A model generated the notes under the pieces. That model was not told the DNA's origin, did not search any database, and saw nothing but the letters and a program-made list of their open reading frames with translations. This document shows positions 1 to 11,634 of a DNA stretch of 12,216 nucleotides, in pieces (the stretch's first letter is position 1; each line of letters opens with the position of its first letter). Location: contig NW_021826668.1 in the NCBI RefSeq assembly GCF_006345805.1, positions 1-12,216 on the forward strand. The letters run 5' to 3'. Source of the stretch: Octopus sinensis. Lineage: Eukaryota. Made by a program: the position numbers and the translations under genes.

Positions 1-12
1 ACATTTTCCTTA

Positions 13-306
13 TAGCGCCTTATGGATGTAATCAATTGAACTTCATGTTCGTTTCTCAATGTTTTTTAGGAGGTCGTTTTCAATTTTAGTTAACTTAACC
101 ACAATGTCTTCTTTGTCATTGAATCATTGGATTCTACTTCATTGATTCTACTTCAGCTTCTACTTTTTCTTCATTTTTTATATTTTCAATATCCTCAACG
201 TCTTGAAATGTATCATTTTCAGAATATTCAAAATTAAGAAATTCTTCTTCGACTTCTAAGGATCAAAAATGTCAGTTTTTTCTACTGCAATATCTTGAAC
301 TTCAAC
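13..306 (-). pseudogene. pogo transposase acidic C-terminal tail
   Basis: In frame with the 4073-4174 piece after removing the Tc1 and one TA: (NHV)VEVQDIAVEKTDIFDP. After single-base frameshifts it continues LEVEEEFLNFEYSENDTFQDVEDIENIKNEEKVEAEVES...NDKEDIVVKL. The exact stop position is uncertain. Confidence 0.7.
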
Positions 307-308
307 TA

Positions 309-526
309 CAGTGGTCAAATTAGTCTTGGGACACTTGTTTATTTTTAATAAAATTTTATTTTCTATAAATACTGTTTTCATTTAATTTTTTCCAAAAGTA
401 TAAAAGTGCACCTAGTTTTTTTACATCATAGATCATTAAAAAAATTAAAAAAGAAGTTTAATTTATAGAAAATTTTTTCATTTAGATCCAAGGCTGGAAT
501 ATCAAAGGCCAATTAGTCTTGGGACA
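309..526 (+). repeat. Tc1 left long imperfect inverted repeat with outer and inner direct repeats
   Basis: AATTAGTCTTGGGACA occurs at 318-333 and 511-526. The sequence between them aligns imperfectly with the reverse complement of 3851-4072. Confidence 0.88.
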
Positions 527-658
527 GTTTGGTATTTATTTACTTTTTGATAAAATAATTGGATTTATCTGCATATCGATCAATGAAATTATACTAATTT
601 CGAATACATTCGTATATTTAAACGATTATTAACATCATTTTCAATTAATATTTTGTAC

Positions 659-1089
659 ATGCCTAAGCGAAAGGAACATTCAGAAGACATAAAAAATCTT
701 ATACTTCTGGAATATAATGCAGGAAAATCAATCCGAAAAATTTCCGAAAGTGTTCATATTCCAAAGAGTACAGTATGGAACATTATCAATAAATGGAAAT
801 TATTAAAAACTACCAAAAATAAGCCAAGATCAGGACAACCGAAAAAAATATCATCTCGATCAATTTCCATAATTAGACGAAAAGTGCTTAATAATCCGAG
901 ATTGTCTCGTAAACAACTCTCTACTTACTTGGGCGAGGTAGGATCGCCAGTATGCTCACAGACTGTTACAAATGCCCTAAGAATAGATGGGTTCCATAAA
1001 TATCGTCCACGTAAAGTTCCGCTGCTTACTAAAAAAAACGTCCATGCACGGTTAAAATATGCCAAAAAAATTTACTCAAGACGACGACT
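659..1089 (+). pseudogene. Tc1 transposase, N-terminal paired-like HTH DNA-binding region
   Basis: ATG at 659: MPKRKEHSEDIKNLI...IPKSTVWNIINKW...RSGQPKKIS...RKVPLLTKKNVHARLKYAKK. One extra A in the run at 1064-1070 gives NLLKTTT up to the Helitron junction. The ORF track's extension beyond 1089 is read-through into the Helitron. Confidence 0.93.
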
Positions 1090-1156
1090 TCTTAATAATA
1101 AAATTGTAATGGTTGTGTCTTCTGTCTGTGTGTGCACACCAACTTCAAATTGGCAA

Positions 1157-1757
1157 TACGATGTCCTCGACTTACATGATGAGGTCCTTAAAACCTTCCC
1201 CCCAAAAAAAATTAAAAAAAAATTTTCTGCATTTTGGTTAAAATGAACAACTACGATGTCCTCGACTTACATGATGAGGTCCTTAAAACCTTCCCCCCAA
1301 AAAAAAATTAAAAAAAAATTTTCTGCATTTTGGTTAAAATGAACACTACGATGTCCTCGACTTACATGATGAGGTCCTTAAACCTTCCCCCCAAAAAAAA
1401 ATTAAAAAAAATTTTCTGCATTTTGGTTAAAATGAACAACTACGATGTCCTCGACTTCATGATGAGGTCCTTAAAACCTTCCCCCCAAAAAAATTAAAAA
1501 AAATTTTCTGCATTTTGGTTAAAATGAACAACTACGATGTCCTCGACTTACATGATGAGGTCCTTAAAACCTTCCCCCCAAAAAAAAATTAAAAAAAATT
1601 TTCTGCATTTTGGTTAAAATGAACAACTACGATGTCCTCGACTTACATGATGATGTCCTTAAACCTTCCCCCCAAAAAAATTAAAAAAAAAAATTTTCTG
1701 CATTTGATTAAAATGAACAACGTTAATGTCCTCGACATTCATGATGAGGTCCATTAA
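1157..1757. repeat. Minisatellite of ~95-bp units (six full units plus one degenerate partial unit) inside the Helitron
   Basis: The unit TACGATGTCCTCGACTTACATGATGAGGTCCTTAAAACCTTCCCCCC(A)nTT(A)nTTTTCTGCATTTTGGTTAAAATGAACAAC starts at 1157, 1252, 1347, 1441, 1533, 1628 and (degenerate) ~1722. Confidence 0.97.
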
Positions 1758-2092
1758 AAATCTCACGTATTAAGAATATCCTTGATGAAAACGACAGCGA
1801 GAATATTAAAAATGATGAACTCCCAATTATTCGCGATAAAGAAATTCAATTCATCTTATGATTTTCTCTTTAAAATTAAATGCATATACCATTCAAAATA
1901 AAACCTATTATCATATTTGACTTGACAGAATGTGCAATTACAGATTGCACGACCTTGAATAGAGTGTGCAATTAACAGATTTTGAAAAACACTTTGATAG
2001 TTGAAACCACATTAGCAAAATCATTAACACAATTTACCACCAATTGACAGCGCAATCAGAAGAATTTGCGTAAAAATATTAACTATTTAGTT

Positions 2093-2327
2093 AAGTTTTT
2101 CGTAAAGATAGAATTTTTTTCGGTATGCCTCTTTTCCTAAACTTTTTTATTATTCAAAAATAATTTTTTCAATAGATAACTGAAGGAGGGAAGACGACCT
2201 TAAGAAAAGAAGTTTTTCGTAAAGATAGAATTATTTTCTGTATGCCTCTTTTTTTCTAATATTTTTTATTATTCAAAAATAATTTTTAAATAGATAACCG
2301 AAGGAGGAAAAACGAAGCTGAAGAAAA
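2093..2327. repeat. Two-copy ~117-bp tandem duplication inside the Helitron
   Basis: AAGTTTTTCGTAAAGATAGAATT...TATGCCTCTTTT...TTATTCAAAAATAATTTTT...TAGATAAC(T/C)GAAGGAGG starts at 2093 and again at 2210. Confidence 0.92.
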
Positions 2328-2680
2328 AACGGTCAGCTTAAGGTAATTAAATCTTTTTTGTGTGTCGCTTTTTTGGCTGCTGCTACTCTGCCTGCCGCAT
2401 CTCCCGCCTCCGCATCTCCGGCTGCCCCATCTCCGCCAGTGGTTTGTCTAATCAAGGTCACTAAGCTAAATCTCCGGACTATAAAGGCTCTTAAGCATTA
2501 TCTTAACTGGCTGTTAAAAAAATTAGACAGGTTGTTGCCGTGGCGGCAGAGATTTTTTTTGTTTAACTTTTTTACAAATTTTTAAAGTTTTTTTTGTTTT
2601 TTCATTTCTTTTGTTTTTAAATTATTTATTTTATTTGTTTTTTTTTTATTTTTTTTGTTATTTTCTACAAATTCAACCGG

Positions 2681-3143
2681 ATTGAATTTTTAAACTCCTT
2701 AGATCCCTCTGGAATGCCGAATCATCTTTTAAAGTTAAAGATAGGCGTTCCAGTGGTTTTATTACGAAATCTTGCGCCACCTAAATTATGCAACGGAACG
2801 AGGTTAGTTATCAAAAATTTGATGGCTAACGTAATAGAGGCGACGATATTCACAGGTAAGTATAGAGGTGAGGATGTTTATATTCCACGAATTCCGATAA
2901 TTTCTGATGAATTACCATTTAGATTTAAAAGGCTGCAATTTCATTTGAGGATGAGTTTTGCAATGACAATAAACAAGGCCCAGGGACAGTCATTAAAGGT
3001 AGTTGGGTTATTTTTAGAGAGTGAGTGCTTTTAACATGGACAGCTGTATGTGGGATGCTCGAGGGTAGGCAGAAGAGAAATTTATTCATATATGCAAAGG
3101 AAGGACGGACGACAAACATCGTTATCAACAGGCGATAGAATAG
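2681..3143 (+). pseudogene. Helitron RepHel PIF1-family helicase C-terminal fragment
   Basis: [31 protein letters not shown]...LCNGTRL...IPRIP...FKRLQF...[14 protein letters not shown]...CF*HGQLYVGCSRV. There is a premature TAA at 3032-3034. Later frameshifts recover NLFIYAKEGRTTNIVYQQAIE*. Confidence 0.95.
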
Positions 3144-3255
3144 GGTTACATTAAACCAGGTAGTTTTATACATCTACATAAACTTATAATTGTTTGATGA
3201 AACAGGCCCTCCGCAGGAGCTAGGTCGCGGTGAGCGAAGCGAGCTGCCGAGCTAG

Positions 3256-3844
3256 TTCTAATATAATATTATTTGGTCAGATGAGACAAAGATAGAAATT
3301 TTTGGGCAGAATTATACAAGCTACGTGTGGCGTAAATCAAAAGATGAATATCGCCCAAAAAATACCATACCAACAGTTAAACATGGCGGGGGCAGTATTA
3401 TGCTATGGGGGTGTTTTTCTTCTTGGGGAGTTGGGGAACTTCATGTAATAGACGGAATATTGAATGCTTCTATATACTGTGATATTTTGGAAAAAAATAT
3501 TTTTTCGTCAATTGAGAAATGTGGTATTGTGGGAAATTGGACATTTCAACAGGACAATGATCCGAAACATACTGCAAAAAAAACTCAAAAATGGCTAGAA
3601 GAACATTTAATTAATATCCTTGAATGGCCAAGTCAGTCCCCAGATCTAAATCCGATTGAAAATCTTTGGAAGAATTAAAAGCCAAAGTATGGGCACATAA
3701 TCCAAAAAATATCACGGAATTAAAATCATTTGTTTCGAAGAATGGAATAAAATTCCCGTAGAAACTTGTAAAAAGCTTGTGAGCAATTATAAAAATCGTT
3801 TAAATGCAGTTTTGGAGAATAAAGGATACTTTACAAAGTATTAA
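3256..3844 (+). pseudogene. Tc1 transposase, DD34E catalytic domain
   Basis: F*YNIIWSDETK...TVKHGGGSIMLWGCF...FQQDNDPKH...WPSQSPDLNPIENLW, with 34 residues between D and E. Single-base frameshifts at 3670-3671 and 3729-3731 restore KELKAKV...EEWNKIP...NKGYFTKY*, with TAA at 3842-3844. Confidence 0.95.
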
Positions 3845-3850
3845 GGGATT

Positions 3851-4072
3851 TGTCCCATGACTAATTAGCATTTGATTTTATGACTGTTTGTTTAAAATGT
3901 CAAAATTTTCTTAAAATAAATGGATTTTGGATTATTTTTAAATGTTTTATTATGTAGAAAACTCTGTTTCATTTTTTAGCCTTTAGAAAAAATTAAAGAA
4001 AAACAGCCATGTTAAAGAAAATAAAAATTTAATTAAAAATAACAAGTGTCCCAAGACTAATTTGACCCACTG
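3851..4072 (-). repeat. Tc1 right long imperfect inverted repeat with inner and outer direct repeats
   Basis: TGTCCCATGACTAATT at 3851-3866 (one mismatch to the left DR) and TGTCCCAAGACTAATT at 4047-4062. Confidence 0.88.
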
Positions 4073-4174
4073 TACATGATTCTTTTTGAATGGGTTACTT
4101 AAAATTCCGAAACAATTTGCAATCGTTTTTTCAGACACATCTTCCCAAGCCATTTTTACGAAAATTACAGTATC
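4073..4174 (-). pseudogene. pogo transposase middle fragment between the hAT and Tc1 insertions
   Basis: Removing the hAT and one TSD gives ...KKLTLK-DTVIFVKMAWEDVSEKTIANCFGILSNPFKKNHV. This contains the AWxxVxxxTIxNCF motif typical of pogo/Tigger transposases. Confidence 0.88.
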
Positions 4175-4182
4175 CTTTAGAG

Positions 4183-5148
4183 CAGGGGTCGGCAGGATTT
4201 TTGTCTTCGCGGGCCAAAATTTTATTTTTGTATGCGATCCGGGCCAAACGAGAAAAAATCCTTATCGGTCACAAAAATAAGGCAACGCTTGCACATTGCG
4301 ATCTTTCTTTATCAAGTTTTTTTTACAACTTTCTTACGAAATAAAAATTTATCAGTTAAAAATGATTATAAAGAAGTGAATTTATTTTACTCATTAATCT
4401 GACTAGTTGCTAAACGTAATATATCGTTAAGATGTGAATCGGTAATCCTCGTTCTCAGACAATTTTTTACATTATTCATTTTAGAGAATAACTGTTCACA
4501 TAAAAATGTGCTTCCAAATATACAAGCCATTTTCTTTTATAAATTCTCCGTCTGAAAATGGTTTCATTCGTTTCGCAATTATCTTTGAAATTTCGTAACT
4601 TGTACGTGTGATATCATCTTTTTCACAACTCAAATTATAAAAAAATGTTGTTTGCTTTTGGTAATTTGTTCGAGTCTCTTAATTTCCTTTATGCGAGATT
4701 CTCCTGTAAACTTGCTGAATTTTTCGTAATGTCGAGTTTCATAATGTCGTTGATGTTATAAATTTTTTTGACAGCAACTTTTTCGAAACATATTAAGCAT
4801 ATAGGTTTTCCATAATCCTCAATAAGAAATATTCATGAGTCCAATCTGGATTAAACGTACGGGTTTGAAGATCTTTAGTTCTTTTCGAACAATTCTGCAT
4901 TCAAATTCACCACACAAAATTATTAACACGTTTATAAATTTATTTAATTTTTAATAATAGATAAAATGTATGTATAAATCTATATTACTAAAAGCCTAGT
5001 ACTTTACTAAATTTGCCCGCGGGCCATGTTAGTTGGAAAAATTTGTCGGCGGGCCAATTTCCCTTAGTATTATAAAATTTGTTCGCGGGCCATTTTTAAA
5101 TCTTCCTGGGCCTAATTTTGCCCGCGGGCCGCGATTTGCCGACCCCTG
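4183..5148 (-). mobile_element. Internally deleted hAT transposon, Buster/SPIN/Charlie-like (966 bp)
   Basis: Perfect 12-bp TIR CAGGGGTCGGCA at 4183-4194 and 5137-5148. Perfect 8-bp TSD CTTTAGAG at 4175-4182 and 5149-5156, with the central TA typical of the Buster subfamily. GGGCC subterminal motifs occur at both ends. Confidence 0.96.
4387..4900 (-). pseudogene. hAT transposase remnant: N-terminal BED-like zinc finger joined to the C-terminal dimerisation motif
   Basis: ATG at 4900. With three 1-nt homopolymer corrections it reads MQNCSKRTKDLQTRTFNPDWTHEYFFIEDYGKPICLICFEKVAVKKIYNIKRHYETRH...SYEISKIIAKRMKPFSDGEFIKE. It then jumps near 4530 to MACIFGSTFLCEQLFSKMNNVKNCLRTRITDSHLNDILRLATSQINE*, with TAA at 4387-4389. 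Confidence 0.9.
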
Positions 5149-6174
5149 CTTTAGAGTTAACTTTTTGTAGGAACTGTATACTGAAATATTTTGCTGTTCC
5201 AACAAATCAGTCAAATACATTAACTTGTGTCGAGTAAAATGTGTTTTAAATGTTTTTATTATACCCAAATCCATAGGTTGAATAAGACCAGTACTATTTG
5301 GAGGAAAAAACAATATTTTTATGTTATCCAAATTTGATGGAACACAATGTGAAGGACAATTGTCCATGAGAAGTAAAATTTGCTTTTTTTCATTTTTGAG
5401 ATGGTAATCAAAGTTTAATAGCCAGTTAGTAAAAATTGTTCCTGTCATCCAAGCTCGTTTTGAGCTATAATAATCAATGAAACATTTATAGTCATAAGAT
5501 TTAAAGCATCTTGGCATTTTAGGTTTCGATCTTTGAAATTTTTATATCCTTGAAATCTGTTTTCTACAATACTCTTCGAAGGAATCAGCTTGTAATACAA
5601 TCCCGTTTCGTCCAAGTTATAAATTTGATCGGCATTATAACTCTTTGATATTTCTATGAATTTTTCGATAAATAAGTCGACATCTACTGGATCATTAGTT
5701 CTCATTTCTCCATGTAACTTGGTCATTCGAAAACCATGCCTCTTTTTGAATTTATGAAGGTATCCATTTGAGTTTTTAAAATTATCCAGTTTTAATTCAG
5801 CTGCGAATAAATTAGCCTTATTTGAAATTAAAGCATCATTAAGAAAGCCACCTTATCATAAATTAGTACAAATTAGCTTTAGACTCAATCGAATCCATCC
5901 ATTCAACTAACGTAGCATCAAGCTGTGGGAACTTGAGTCTATGCGCATTTTTTGAAAATAGATTTTGTTTTTTACACACTTTGAGAAAAAAATCTTTTTT
6001 CAAAATAATATTATTAATTGTTTTTCTGGAAATCTTCTTTTTAAACAAATGGGAAAATCTATCAGCCAAATACTGACATGAAACATCTTCATTTTGATTT
6101 TTAAAAGTTAAAATCTCTATTTTTTGATAAAAGTGAGACGAGTATTAATTACCACGAGAATTGTTCGAAGACAT
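5149..6174 (-). pseudogene. pogo-family transposase, N-terminal CENP-B-like HTH plus DDD catalytic core (DD30D)
   Basis: ATG at 6174, then QKIEIL...KISRKTINNII and KFPQLDATLVEWMDSIESK|GGFLNDALISNKA...KFKKRHG. Catalytic motifs are NLDETG, LLMDNCPSH and QPMDLGII, with 30 residues between the 2nd and 3rd D. Lesions: a stop or frameshifts near 6145, a 25-nt intron-like insert at 5852-5876, and a deletion after KDR near 5526. Confidence 0.92.
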
Positions 6175-6229
6175 AAAAAACTGAAATTTTATTAATTTGC
6201 AAATTATATAAAATATATTTTAAAATTTA

Positions 6230-6352
6230 TGGTCAATTTGAGAATTGGCCACTTTCAATGGAAATTCGAATTTTTCTTAAGATAATTTTATAAGTGTGGT
6301 CAATTTCAGAGGTGCCCAATTTCAGAGGTGGCCAATTTCAGAGGAGTCACTG
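6230..6352 (-). repeat. pogo terminal and subterminal 16-bp direct repeats (probable transposase-binding sites)
   Basis: TGG(T/C)CAATTTCAGAGG-like units at 6297-6312, 6313-6328 and 6329-6344, plus two degenerate units at 6230-6245 and 6246-6261. Confidence 0.85.
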
Positions 6353-6533: not shown

Positions 6534-7535
6534 TTATCTTTTTAAAAATTGTTTAAATGCGGCTGAAGTTGCCTCATGAACATCACTTGGTCCCTTATCT
6601 TTCAACAAATCCGAATAGTTTATATACTCCAAAGTCTCCGAATTAATAAAAAATTCCTTTTTATACTAAACAATTTATCACTAAAATATACTTTTTTTCA
6701 TTTCACTAGGATTTATATAAGTAAATGTTTCTGTAAAAGACTCTGTCGGTTTATTAGCGATCAATTCCTGGGTCTTTGTGCTTGTCCCGGTTATCCAAAC
6801 TTGCTGGGTTTTGTGGTATCTCCAATTCCTACGAAATCTAAACAACTTTGACAGCTCTAAACTACAATTCAATGCTTGTATTCACATGGAGTTCATTTTG
6901 AGTGTTCAAATAAAACATAAGTGCCAAAGTTGTGTCACTGTGTCTTCCCAACTTCAACGGCGGGACCTATTTTTAACAAAAAAATGTCAAAATACCATTT
7001 CTTTAATTTTTTTGCTGTAGTAACATGGTTGGAGAATCATTTCTAACATACAAATATATAAATACCAGTTCCCTCGACAAAACAGTCCCTGGATGAATCA
7101 TTCCAATCCAAATTACTTAAATAATTAATTTTAAATACTTGTAGGGGATTGAATCGAAATCTTCTTTATCAAACCCTTGAAATTGTTCAGTTCCTGTTTC
7201 TTGAGATTCTTCGACTAATTTTTTTAAATTTGCAAATTTTTCGAATGTATTTTGACTGATGGATGGCTTATTTGGGTTAGAGCTTTTCATTTTTTCGTCT
7301 TTGGTGTATTGGTCGTGAAATTGGAGCTGTTGGTCATGAAATAAATAGTTTTTTACTTGTAGGAGTTCTTTCTAGTTCGTCTCGTAATTCATGGAACCAT
7401 CGGCTATTATTAGTTAATGTTTATAGTACCTTTGGTTTCTTTTTCCTTTAATATTCTTGGTTTTTTGGTCAGTATTCTCACTGTTCGTAGAAGGCTATTA
7501 TTTTAGGCTATATAATGACCTACATGATTTGACAT
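6534..7535 (-). CDS. NOT2: NOT2/CNOT2-like CCR4-NOT subunit (NOT2/3/5 domain), 9 exons and 8 micro-introns, ~261 aa
   Basis: Exons: 7535-7524, 7494-7430, 7403-7357, 7326-7139, 7115-7066, 7042-6996, 6966-6866, 6837-6692, 6665-6534. The spliced C-terminal half ILQPCYYSKKIKEMVPPLKLGRHSDTTLALMFYLNTQNELHVNTSIELFRRNWRYHKTQQVWIT...MKKYKKEF matches the NOT-box pattern I recall for CNOT2 (IKLGRY...ELFNRDWRYHK...VWIT...KEF). One A must be removed from each of the runs at 7369-7371 and 6692-6698. The 5' exons are less certain. Confidence 0.82.
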
Positions 7536-7783: not shown

Positions 7784-8319
7784 CTTCCATTTTGGTCAAA
7801 GAAGTTACTTGATCCGGAATCGATAAAGAAGAAACTGGAAATGACTCACACTAAGGGAAATCGTGTAAATGAAGTACAAATGTCTGGCATAAAGGCCACT
7901 TGGTCGGGGAAGTTACTTGATCCAGAATCTGCCACGCATGCTGGTATCAGCACACAGAAGGGAACTCATCTAATTGACCACAAATCCCCAAAGAAATACG
8001 ATATTAGTGTTCAAACTGACGACATTGTCAAAAACGGATCGAATCCGGAACTCAGACTGCTTCATTAACACGGGAATTTAAACGGACCCATGCCCAGAAC
8101 AAACCCGCCGCCCCGAAGACGAGAGCAGTGAAGAAAACTGCGGTAGCAAATTCTGGAGTTCAGCTGCCAAGTCCCGAAGCCCGGCTGGAGGACGATGGGA
8201 CGCCTCTAGAGCCGGCTGAAATGGGTAGCAAACGGAAAGCAGGCAGACCCCCTTTACCGAAAAAGGTGGCGCTCCCACGGGAGGTCAGCCACCCATGTCG
8301 GAAGGATGCCTCGTTCTGA
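7784..8319 (+). pseudogene. Probable LINE ORF1 remnant
   Basis: A higher-GC coding-like stretch directly upstream of the APE domain, with a duplicated peptide WS(K/G)KLLDPES and a basic patch SKRKAGRPPLPKK. The assignment rests on position only; I recognised no domain. Confidence 0.45.
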
Positions 8320-10057
8320 CAATTCTAAATGCCCGCTCACTCACGAGACGGGTAACGGAGCTGAGGTTTCTGCTAGCCTCAGCGAAAACGGACGTATTGA
8401 TTGTCAACGAGACAACTGAAGGGACCAAATAAAATTGAATTTGAAGGCTAAAAATCCCTTAATATCCCATGGAAAACTGACGCAGTAGCAGGAACCTCTG
8501 TCTTCTATAATGAAAGTATGAGAGTCAAAAACCGGTGACCTGAACGCAAAAAATGTTGTCTATAGGTGTGAAGCAACCAATACGGACGGAGAGGGTACTT
8601 GAGAGTTTGTCTCAAACTCTTTTTTCGATATGGACGTCCGAAGCTAAACCACTATCCGGATAGAGGCAGACCGGATCGCCTTGAATTTTTCTCTCCTCGG
8701 CGTCTATTACTCCACTCTGTGATCGTCCGACAATCGAGGTAAATGTAGGAAGTGATCACATCCCGCAATCATTGAGACTAAGGACGAAAATAAATCTGAC
8801 AGAAGACGTGTTTATTGGATATACTCTGTCGAATGTGGATTGGCATCTATTTGAGTACTCTATGCGCTTGGCACTTAATACTACCGTGCTCCGTCCTCTT
8901 CGGACCATGGAGGATATAGACGACCTCGAGAATCGCACGATGAGGTGTTCCAACGTGGGAGTCAGAAATCAGTTAAAAGTTGAAATCGACCACCTCAAGA
9001 CGATGATAGTTGAAATTGGGAAAAAGAAAATAGAAAAATCATGGAGGAAGGAATGCCGAATGCTGGATAAGAGAAATCCAAAGTTTTGGAAGGCGTATCA
9101 GCGCCTGAACAACGCGGAAGGGAAAGGCGACAACATTGTGTTAAAGGGGCAAGTTGGAAAGTATATCCCCTTCGATCTTGTCCCGGATGAACTAAGAAGG
9201 CAGCTGGGTAGAACCCAAGAAGTCGAACCTGAATCAATTATTCCACAAAAGACCTTTGAGAAAGTCACTTCAAGGCTAGAATCTCTAAATCTTGTGAGTG
9301 GACCTCTATGCGAGGCTATTACCGAAAAAGAGACACAAGAAGTGATAGCAGGGCTGAAAAACAAGGCCCCTGGATTCGACTACATACCTGTGTTACTTCT
9401 TAAGAAAGCTCCGAGGATCCTCCTACGGGCTCTAACTATGCTTTTCGACGCTAGTTTTACCCTTGGTTATCTTCCGCCCACCTGGAAGTGCACAGTCGTT
9501 CGTATGATCCCGAAACCTGGGAAAACAAGTCTCCTAGCAGAAAACTACAGCCCTATAAGCCTGATCTGCGCTTTTTCGAAAATTATGGAGAAAATAATTT
9601 TGAAAGACTCTCATTACATGTTGAAAAGAATAATCTGCTTTCCGTTGTACAATGGGGTTTTCGTCCTGGGAAATCCACGGGAAACTGCTTGAAGGTTCTA
9701 GAAAGGGAACTTTCTTGGGCAATACGTAATAAATCTTGCACGACTGCTGTGTGCTTGGATTTGTCGAAGGCTTTTGACTGCGTCTGGCACCTGTGCAGGC
9801 TGTCGAAGCGGAGGAGCGAAAATGCTCGTGTCTTTGAAGTTGGGGACTTGAAACTTTCGCAGAACCTCCAATACCTTGGGGTTACAATAGATGCCAGAGG
9901 ATCCTATGGAAATCATATCGATACCCAAAGGAAGAGAGCCGTTAAAATCCTAGGAAGCCTGACCAGATTTCATCTCAAAGAAAAATTGGATAACTCATAT
10001 GAATCCTGCGTCCATAAAATACAGTCCGTCCTGGAGAAGGCGCGGTTGCTTTTTTAG
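8304..10057 (+). pseudogene. LINE ORF2 (apurinic endonuclease plus reverse transcriptase), degenerate
   Basis: APE motifs: LTILNARSL...DVLIVNET and HYPDRGRPDRLEFF...GSDHIP. RT motifs: KAPGFDYIP, WKCTVVRMIPKPGK...YSPISL, QWGFRPGKST and LDLSKAFDCVWH. It then jumps straight to ...QYLGVTID, so the GVPQG/YADD core is missing. Confidence 0.92.
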
Positions 10058-10364: not shown

Positions 10365-11295
10365 CCAAGCCCTTTTTGAACTGTAATATGAAACAGAGCA
10401 TTGATAGTCGTAATTTTGGAAACATCTTGGCATCTTTGAGTTTCCAATTAAAACAGGATTTCGTGTGCATATGCGATGAGTAGTTATGTGATGGATCTCT
10501 CAAAAAGCAAAAATCTTTATTACCTGGGAGCAACCATCAACTGTCGTGGCTCGTACGCAGATCACATAGCAAATCAGAAAAAGAGGAGTGTGAGGATCCT
10601 CAAAAGCTTAACCAGGTTCCATCTGGATCCGGAAACGTACATCTACGTATAAAAAACGTGTGTGGAGCCAGTCCTCACATATGGCTACGAGGGCTGGTAC
10701 GGTACGGAGGAGAGTGACTACCTGATCGAACAGTTGGAAAAGACAAGACGTTTCGCTATGAAATTGGCTTACGGAGTACAACTTGACGGAAGGTTAAAAG
10801 ACTCACAAGAATCCTCTGTGCCCACGATCCGGATGGTCTTGGAGAATTGTCGTCAAACATGACTAGTATTGGGGATACGCATGGAAAGAGACACTTCGGT
10901 GCCTTGTTTTTATCTCCCCGCCGATGATTTCTTCCTTGTTTTTCTTTTTCATTTCGCTCAATAAACACTATTCTATTCTATTCTAAAACAGGATTTAATT
11001 TGTGATTATTTGCACACAACATTACAGATACCTGATCCTTAAAATTTTTATATCGTCCAAACTGAGTCTTGCAAATACTTTTAGGTGGAATTAGTTTGTA
11101 GAAAATCCTTGTTTTATCAAGGTTATAAATTTCATCGATAGTATAGGACTTGAATAAATTTTGAAATTCATTTAAAAATCTTTCGATGTCAACTTTTTTA
11201 TCAGTTTTCATCTGCACATGCAATTTTCTCAGACGGAATTCATGTCTTTTTTTAAACTTGAACAAGAATCCGGCAGAGTTCTTAAAATTATCGAG
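10365..11295 (-). pseudogene. Second, diverged pogo-like transposase fragment, interrupted by a LINE
   Basis: LDNFKNSAGFLFKFKKRHEF...IYNLDKTRIFYKLIP...YKNFKDQVSVMLCANNHKLNPVL runs from 11295 to 10984. It continues after the LINE as IGNSKMPRCFQNYDYQCSVSYYSSKRAW down to 10365. It is collinear with copy 1. Confidence 0.88.
10462..10983 (+). mobile_element. 5'-truncated LINE (522 bp), related to the 7784-10201 element
   Basis: 13-bp TSD TAAAACAGGATTT at 10449-10461 and 10984-10996. It encodes YLGATINCRGSYADHI...SLTRFHL...CVEPVLTYG, similar to YLGVTIDARGSYGNHI...SLTRFHL in LINE copy 1. AATAAA near 10961-10966 is followed by a (CTATT)3 tail at 10968-10982. Confidence 0.92.
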
Positions 11296-11304
11296 AGAAA
11301 GATC

Positions 11305-11545
11305 ATGGTGAATGAAAATCTCGAATAGACGTCAATCACAGTCAACAACCAAGAAAATTGATCAATTATTATTTTCAAACCTTGGGAATAACACAACTTT
11401 ATATCTTTTTAGGTCAATCAGATCAATCTGAAATCTCTCATTCGGTACATCTGCAAAAATATGACTTACGTCGTCATATTGTTTCAGCGGGACTTCAGAC
11501 TGGCATTCATCGCAGTCTCTTACCACATTATTTATGGCTAATAAA
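11305..11545 (-). pseudogene. Retroviral-type (rve) integrase fragment, Ginger/Gypsy-like
   Basis: VVRDCDECQ (CxxC of the zinc finger), then PNERFQIDLIDLKRY and, after a frameshift, DQFSWLLTVIDVYSRFSF. No LTR or TIR is visible, so the element class is unresolved. Confidence 0.8.
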
Positions 11546-11634
11546 TGACCCACAAGATTAGACATCAAATAAAATACAAATCAATAAAAGTTATTCTAAG
11601 TTTCGTTGGAAAATGTGTTCATAATCACGTTAGC

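Follow-up and report, generated by a model that had tools for sequence, protein, structure and literature searches.

The completion of a transposase reading frame only through the splicing of a short intron is known from Drosophila melanogaster pogo, the P element, and the fungal Fot1/pogo elements. The intron of Drosophila pogo is about 55 nt long, and in the P element transposition is regulated by how much of the RNA is spliced and how much is not, with the splicing of IVS3 being tissue-specific. The idea of a mobile-element intron in the tiny format of the host is associated with the transposons of micro-intron ciliates such as Paramecium and Blepharisma, and papers on Blepharisma reportedly mention both pogo and introns. 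[quoted passage not shown] These animals inhabit the kidneys or renal sacs of Octopus sinensis and have a genome with 49% repeats and 36.7% GC (PMC6543705; Lu 2019, PMC6736024). The supplement of the Dicyema genome paper does not mention Tigger, pogo, or hAT.

The family described here has the TA target, inverted repeats, CENP-B/Tc5-type helix-turn-helix (HTH), and DDE_1 (putatively DDD) domain in common with pogo-type elements, and, as in the systems above, its transposase frame would be completed only by the removal of a short intron, which is 25-26 nt long, unlike the much longer one of Drosophila pogo. It also has the same domain set as TIGD, Jerky, and CENP-B, host genes derived from Tigger/pogo, with 30-36% identity to Tigger-like proteins, although it is not domesticated, being multi-copy, with TA duplications, perfect inverted repeats, and 96-100% identity within each subfamily. 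The presence of an intron in the tiny format of the host recalls the ciliate transposons; in contrast to these, the standard code is used here, as neither TAA nor TAG occurs in frame among 517 codons. In format the family intron resembles the dicyemid micro-introns (24-26 nt, GT-AG, about 80% A+T, with mini-introns of the same size in neighbouring cellular genes), the difference being that its carrier is a mobile element instead of a cellular gene. Intron-bearing pogo elements are known in principle, Drosophila pogo being an example; the present family differs in having a host-typical ultra-short intron inside the Tc5 HTH. We consider it likely, from comparison of sequences, that the 25 nt at positions 5876..5852 derive from a true GT-AG spliceosomal micro-intron, inactivated in this copy and belonging to a pogo/Tigger-type family, the host of which is most likely a dicyemid mesozoan.

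The stretch analysed here (the window, 12,216 nt, deposited as O. sinensis) is A+T-rich and consists almost wholly of nested mobile elements, which include two pogo copies, pieces of non-LTR retrotransposons, and an integrase piece. No recognisable host gene was found in it, and tRNA and Rfam scans of the window gave no match. The main pogo copy spans from its 5' inverted repeat at 6352 to the left window edge, and the features of the window are as follows.

6175..6352, minus strand: 5' untranslated region, containing the terminal inverted repeat (TIR) CAGTGACTCCTCTGAAATTG at 6352-6333, a TA flank, and 16-nt subterminal repeats at 6301-6344
5877..6174, minus strand: exon 1 (ORF1, 99 codons + 1 nt), encoding a CENP-B-N-like HTH and the first third of HTH_Tnp_Tc5
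6146 and after 6133, minus strand: damage in exon 1, a +1 insertion and a -1 deletion, with an in-frame TAA at 6147-6145
5852..5876, minus strand: putative micro-intron remnant, phase 1, 25 nt (CTAATTTGTACTAATTTATGATAAG), with the donor G->C at 5876 and one T gone after 5856
5149..5851, minus strand: first part of exon 2, encoding the remaining HTH_Tnp_Tc5 and most of DDE_1
about 5527-5530, minus strand: deletion of 61-64 nt in exon 2, VSIMLCSNMSGNHKLKPVMI lost and the frame shifted
4175..5156 including target-site duplications, unstranded: non-autonomous hAT in exon 2 (element 4183-5148, TIR CAGGGGTCGGCA)
4073..4182, minus strand: exon 2 continued (...AWEDVSEKTIANCFGILSNPFKK), 97% identical to the intact L006
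311..4072, unstranded: nested composite insertion of 3.8 kb splitting exon 2, Tc1-like, TA/CAGTGGGTCAAATTAGTCTTGGGACA
650-1030 and 3270-3750, within 311..4072: Tc1-like transposase pieces
1157-1759, inside the Tc1-like composite: 95-nt tandem array
2700-3080, inside the Tc1-like composite: Helitron-helicase-like piece
1..310, minus strand: C-terminal part of exon 2 (...TDIFDP...EVQLITSIRRYKEN), leaving at the window edge, 96% identical to L006 element 1369-1674
7138-7116 (23 nt), 7065-7043 (23 nt), and 6995-6967 (29 nt), minus strand: three candidate mini-introns, GTATTT...AG, 83-91% A+T
10365..11295, minus strand: second, diverged pogo fragment, 68-74% nucleotide identity, with a non-LTR fragment inside at 10461-10979

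The main copy has 98-100% identity to an intact relative, and the hAT within it is flanked by a perfect 8-bp target duplication (CTTTAGAG at 4175-4182 and 5149-5156). Removal of the element with one duplication restores ...KKLTLK/DTVIFVKMAWEDVS.... Read from its sequence, the window pogo is a recent copy that is no longer functional. It is dead whatever the insert is, because of its small indels, the 61-64-nt deletion, and the hAT and 3.8-kb Tc1-like insertions; for the same reasons, including the in-frame TAA that accompanies the indels, the control of transposition by splicing that had been proposed is moot for this copy. The second pogo fragment was rejected as an internal control, since its start lies some 60 nt downstream of where the intron would be, and it is therefore uninformative on the intron.

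On the minus strand, positions 5880..5848 read aaa g/ctaatttgtactaatttatgataag/gt ggc, and re-reading of this strand agreed with the original prediction on both the sequence and the position of the 25-nt insert. When the insert is retained, the frame of ORF1 (ATG at 6174, ...LVEWMDSIESK) reaches a TAA within it, while the frame 3' of the insert translates as GGFLNDALISNKANLF.... Excision of the 25 nt joins WMDSIESK to GGFLNDALIS, giving the product ...LVEWMDSIESKGGFLNDALISNKA.... Its Pfam matches are an unbroken HTH_Tnp_Tc5 (residues 82-142, profile 1-64 of 66, junction at 99/100) and, after it, DDE_1. The proposal that removal of the insert restores the CENP-B-type HTH was borne out by this single match over the junction. 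The excised junction is also gap-free against 6 of 8 intron-less relatives and off by one residue against the other two. The insert starts with CT and ends with AG, the donor GT of a U2-type GT-AG intron being absent in the window copy. It contains, as described before, both TACTAAT and the terminal AG, of which the first had been taken for a branch point.

The window copy was compared with seven further loci fetched from the O. sinensis assembly (L001, L002, and L004-L008). The insert lies at the same codon and in the same phase in all eight copies, which makes it more than a chance feature; it is 24, 25, or 26 nt long, ends with AG in every copy, and has GT..AG ends in seven of the eight, the window being the exception. 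The copies fall into two subfamilies with a DNA identity of about 70% between them.

Subfamily A, L006 and L007: GTAATTTGTACTAATTTATGATTAAG, 26 nt
Subfamily A, L001: GTAATTGTACTAATTTATGATTAAG, 25 nt
Subfamily A, window: CTAATTTGTACTAATTTATGATAAG, 25 nt
Subfamily B, L004, L005, and L008: GTATTAATTGAAAACCAATTTTTAG, 25 nt
Subfamily B, L002: GTATTAATGAAAACCAATTTTTAG, 24 nt

The sister copies had been expected to start with GTA, and all seven do, with GTAAT... in L001, L006, and L007 and GTATT... in L002, L004, L005, and L008. Since they have GTA at the place where the window has CTA, the window start is a G>C donor mutation of this copy, as one of the two earlier proposals held; against the 26-nt consensus of subfamily A, GTAATTTGTACTAATTTATGATTAAG, the window insert differs by G1->C and one missing T. 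The other proposal, a 26-nt GC-AG intron with one miscalled G, was rejected, as the frame stays broken (AAA GTG GCT TTC...) and the subfamily consensus is a 26-nt GT-AG segment. TACTAAT is present only in subfamily A; the corresponding motifs in subfamily B are TTAAT or CCAAT, and their distances from the 3' end are different. The motif itself was found where predicted, but its role as a branch site is not supported because it is confined to one subfamily. Divergence of the interior was discarded as an argument for an intron, the insert (64% identity and three gaps) being not clearly more diverged than its flanks (63-73%).

In a protein search, the close relatives of the conceptual product (62-90% identity) were only NCBI-annotated proteins of O. 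sinensis, 14 in number, named 'tigger transposable element-derived protein 6-like' or 'jerky-like' and encoded on contigs between 13 kb and 1.29 Mb in size. The junction is spanned by no O. sinensis gene model and by no entry in the protein collection; several models start exactly 3' of it, and two NCBI models, P0004 and P0038, share its acceptor, AG/GTGG, which they join to unrelated upstream exons. A more distant Logan relative (L003, 48% identity) lies on a contig that ends 61 nt 5' of the called ORF, and a 31-nt GT..AG segment is possibly present there one codon off the family insert site.

The host was approached through the genes next to the sister copies. In L008 a cathepsin-L-like gene adjoins the pogo element, and its Peptidase_C1 domain, lying within about 750 nt, forms one HMM stretch (E=1.9e-52) after three excisions and two homopolymer frame corrections. 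The inserts removed were of 27 nt (GTTGGTAAATAAATAATTACTCTTCAG) and 22 nt (GTATAATTGTATAACATTATAG), both GT-AG, and a third of about 25 nt without GT; the gene could be a pseudogene. A hAT-type ORF in L004 becomes continuous once GT-AG inserts of 25 and 31 nt are removed, and at the site of the first of these a different hAT in the window has unbroken coding sequence with the same spacing. L007 carries densely packed MBT and PDZ exons, with candidate mini-introns in the MBT gene. The earlier statement that the insert matches the intron size of a micro-intron host is consistent with these introns of 22-31 nt in neighbouring genes on sister contigs and with the dicyemid median of 27 bp (PMC6543705). 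The statement that eight host introns of the window all start with GTA could not be reproduced: only three candidates were found, at 6967-7138, which bridge short open frames into a joined protein with no recognised domain and for which no homology support was found, and the validated mini-introns of related loci start with GTA or GTT. Only homology-backed mini-introns were used as evidence. A scan for GT..AG segments of 18-44 nt bridging long ORFs in the window and the loci, with all 256 dinucleotide pairs as the control, found no enrichment of GT-AG (44 against a mean of 47) and cannot discriminate for that reason. The RT ORF at 8685-9689, considered as a marker of the host lineage, had two weak matches.

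These neighbouring genes (MBT, PDZ, cathepsin L) are of metazoan type and therefore point to an animal host, not to a ciliate; a ciliate origin with code 6 was rejected, as there are long ORFs without in-frame TAA or TAG and both the repeats and the neighbouring genes are of animal type. The window and the sister contigs have three other repeat families in common at 92-94% identity, indicating that the window comes from the genome of the sister contigs or a very close one. In an octopus, an intron of only 25 nt would be highly unusual, and introns of 22-31 nt are not expected in octopus genes. Since the sister contigs hold compact genes with such introns, the host is probably a dicyemid, and the circumstantial evidence suggests that the 'octopus' sister contigs and the window are probably dicyemid DNA. 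Protein searches returned no match named as Dicyema, and a literature search found no published report of dicyemid contamination in octopus assemblies.

The contigs might instead truly belong to the octopus, with an octopus spliceosome able to remove introns of 25-26 nt, or with an element acquired horizontally from a dicyemid in the intron format of the parasite. The deposits speak for such an origin: all sister copies are filed as O. sinensis on contigs of up to 1.29 Mb, as are all 14 annotated relatives with their range of contig sizes. In the 56 kb around the pogo copies repeats prevail and genes are scarce, and the first protein search gave no high-identity match from public read assemblies. 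Nevertheless, the same contigs carry compact non-transposon genes with introns of 22-31 nt, and the relatives all come from one assembly, with no O. bimaculoides protein found. The L008 cathepsin likewise has no close octopus homologue among the matches listed; in a collection of 5.8 billion proteins, its best relative among the matches listed has at most 41% identity, and none of the ten listed is an octopus protein. An octopus origin of the contigs is unlikely on this evidence. A passage of a pogo with a dicyemid-format intron from parasite to cephalopod, or the reverse, after which the intron is removed in its new host by a spliceosome not known to process introns so short, or persists as a trace of the transfer, is regarded as similarly unlikely.

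The intact elements also bear on the reading of the insert as a spliced micro-intron. Three copies are complete: L006:2373-4255 (1883 bp), L008:7287-9109 (1823 bp), and L004:3474-5193 (1720 bp). All three are flanked by TA duplications, end in perfect 20-nt inverted repeats, and keep both reading frames open. The motif TA/CAGTGA(C/A)TCCTC... occurs at both ends of L004, L005, L006, L007, and L008, with the window copy retaining the 5' end at 6352. With the GT..AG segment excised, L006 has a single ORF of 517 aa and L008 one of 502 aa, and the ORF of L004 is continuous as well. The transposase matches HTH_Tnp_Tc5 (E=5.7e-12) and the whole of DDE_1 (E=1.9e-41, profile 1-177 of 177) in Pfam, whereas its CENP-B_N match is weak (E=0.0035). 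The three D residues of a putative DDxD catalytic triad, read by eye from the L006 protein, lie in YNLDETG, LLLMDNCPSH, and QPMDLGII, with 30 residues between the last two. By its domains and termini the element is a member of the pogo/Tigger group of Tc1/mariner DNA transposons.

According to a further explanation, the insert is a neutral inherited lesion, and its carriers are non-autonomous copies moved by an intron-less master transposase; another pogo family of the same genome (L005:14824-15243) does lack an intron at the insert site. Selection argues against this. Synonymous sites are saturated between subfamilies A and B (pS about 0.7), and dN/dS is 0.17 in exon 1 and 0.12 in exon 2, so both halves have stayed coding across the insert despite this divergence. 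In addition, both ORFs are intact in three copies from two subfamilies, GT and AG are retained while the interior and the length vary, and none of the eight copies examined is intron-less. A neutral lesion is thus very unlikely, and the same observations favour a spliced micro-intron.

The two frames could also be joined in translation, by a programmed ribosomal frameshift or by a bypass in which the ribosome skips the insert from one flanking GGT to the other. The insert is indeed flanked by identical GGT codons (AAA GGT ... A GGT GGN), and transposase frames are joined by frameshifting in some prokaryotic insertion sequences. However, the offset of ORF2 is +2 in intact copies of subfamily A (26 nt) and +1 in those of subfamily B (25 nt), and in subfamily A the two frames do not overlap, since ORF1 ends upstream of the final ORF2-frame stop; a conserved frameshift is excluded on these two grounds. 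The incoming frame also meets stops within the insert, whose GT..AG ends, A+T-richness, and size are those of the introns in neighbouring genes, while removal of GT..AG would give the same AAA/GGT GGN junction in all copies. The bypass would need special signals and has nothing else in its favour, and the joining of the frames in translation is scarcely credible overall. A private insertion in the window copy by templated repair or slippage, with TAAATTAGC at 5808-5816 of the plus strand as the template, can practically be dismissed: the sequence was found where the original prediction placed it, and 5808-5822 resembles the insert over a short stretch, but the motif is normal coding sequence (K-A-N-L) that the sister copies have conserved, and the insert, expected in that scenario to be missing from these copies, is present in all eight, including those of the subfamily with only about 70% DNA identity.

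With the insert read as a micro-intron, intact elements of 1.7-1.9 kb, bounded by the TA duplication and the 20-nt perfect inverted repeats, would contain a transposase gene in two exons. The first exon of 99 codons would encode the first HTH together with the beginning of the Tc5-type HTH, and the second, of about 400-418 codons, the rest of that HTH and a putative DD30D catalytic domain. Between AAA G and GT GGN the two exons would be separated by an intron in phase 1, 26 nt long in subfamily A and 25 nt in subfamily B. Splicing of the pre-mRNA, with the predicted junction ...GAGTCTAAAG/GTGG..., would be needed for the transposase of 502-517 aa, and the second HTH would be completed only by this step. 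Unspliced RNA would be expected to reach a stop 3-5 codons into the intron, giving a peptide of about 103 aa with the first HTH only. The splicing would presumably be carried out by a host spliceosome adapted to micro-introns. In its size and A+T-richness the intron resembles those of the probable host's own genes.

The window copy itself is ordinary, being another decayed transposon copy with a dead donor site. The family to which it belongs provides a clear case, supported by comparison of copies, in which the transposase of a DNA transposon appears to depend on the removal of a 25-26-nt intron in the middle of an HTH. It suggests that the mobile elements of a micro-intron animal follow the splicing format of their host, and the pogo micro-intron could serve as a compact natural substrate for the study of how ultra-short introns are recognised. 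The most useful by-product may be the hint of dicyemid DNA in the O. sinensis assembly and protein set. If this is confirmed, part of both public resources is mislabelled and of dicyemid origin, and such mislabelling would affect inferences on octopus gene content and on horizontal transfer between parasite and host.

In a different pogo/Tigger-like family of the same genome (L005:14824-15243, plus strand, on a sister-locus contig), the coding sequence is unbroken at the homologous HTH_Tc5 position, so the micro-intron is specific to the window pogo's own family. The relative L003, from the public read assembly SRR33639317 and 48% identical, has a short contig; in its positions 1-70 an in-frame TGA precedes the LNDD motif by ten codons, and there is a possible 31-nt GT..AG insert one codon off the window intron site. 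In the subfamily B gene models of NCBI (P0002, P0036, P0038 and P0039), an in-frame 102-nt transposase piece (VYNSYKK...QNCFK; L004:4610-4711 and equivalents in L008) is removed as an intron; the piece might be a genuine alternative intron, or the gene prediction might be at fault.

The window holds the following repeats and mobile elements:

311-4072, Tc1-like element (TA|CAGTGGGTCAAATTAGTCTTGGGACA) in the pogo C-terminal region
1157-1759, tandem array (95 nt x 6.4) invading the Tc1-like element
2700-3080, Helitron/PIF1-helicase-like fragment, also invading it
4175-5156, non-autonomous hAT (966 bp, with target duplication) inside the pogo DDE domain
6301-6344, 16-nt unit x 2.8, CAATTTCAGAGGTGCC (plus strand), just internal to the pogo 5' inverted repeat
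8200-10050, plus strand, non-LTR retrotransposon (endonuclease and RT)
10365-11295, minus strand, a second pogo fragment, diverged and interrupted by a non-LTR piece
11320-11600, minus strand, integrase (rve-like) fragment adjoining the second pogo fragment

The 16-nt repeats are conserved in the sister copy L001 and are probably transposase-binding subterminal repeats. With its TIR CAGGGGTCGGCA, a perfect 8-bp target duplication CTTTAGAG and an in-frame pogo empty site, the hAT is a textbook case of nested insertion. Window positions 1090-3272 share ~93% identity with L005:1506-3534, and the non-LTR piece splitting the second pogo (10461-10979) is 94% identical to L005:19600-20112. The non-LTR retrotransposon carries an internal deletion and a frameshift; for its 335-aa ORF, a search of 5.8 billion proteins gave no more than two relatives, both weak (36-39% identity).

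Compact gene regions occur on three sister contigs deposited under Octopus sinensis (VCDQ01000373.1, VCDQ01006471.1 and VCDQ01010770.1):

L008:5700-6400, minus strand
L007:636-950, minus strand
L007:5478-6828, plus strand
L004:6790-7560, plus strand

In the cathepsin-like gene of L008 (5780-5830 and 6040-6060, minus strand), two homopolymer tracts each hold a frameshift, and the third mini-insert lacks GT; long-read assembly of a contaminant at low coverage may have introduced these defects as errors, or they may mark the gene as a pseudogene. The 22-31-nt introns of these compact cathepsin, MBT, PDZ and hAT-type genes, found on contigs filed as O. sinensis, suggest that assembly GCA_006345805.1 is contaminated with dicyemid DNA and that RefSeq proteins XP_029653941 to XP_029657973 are mislabelled.
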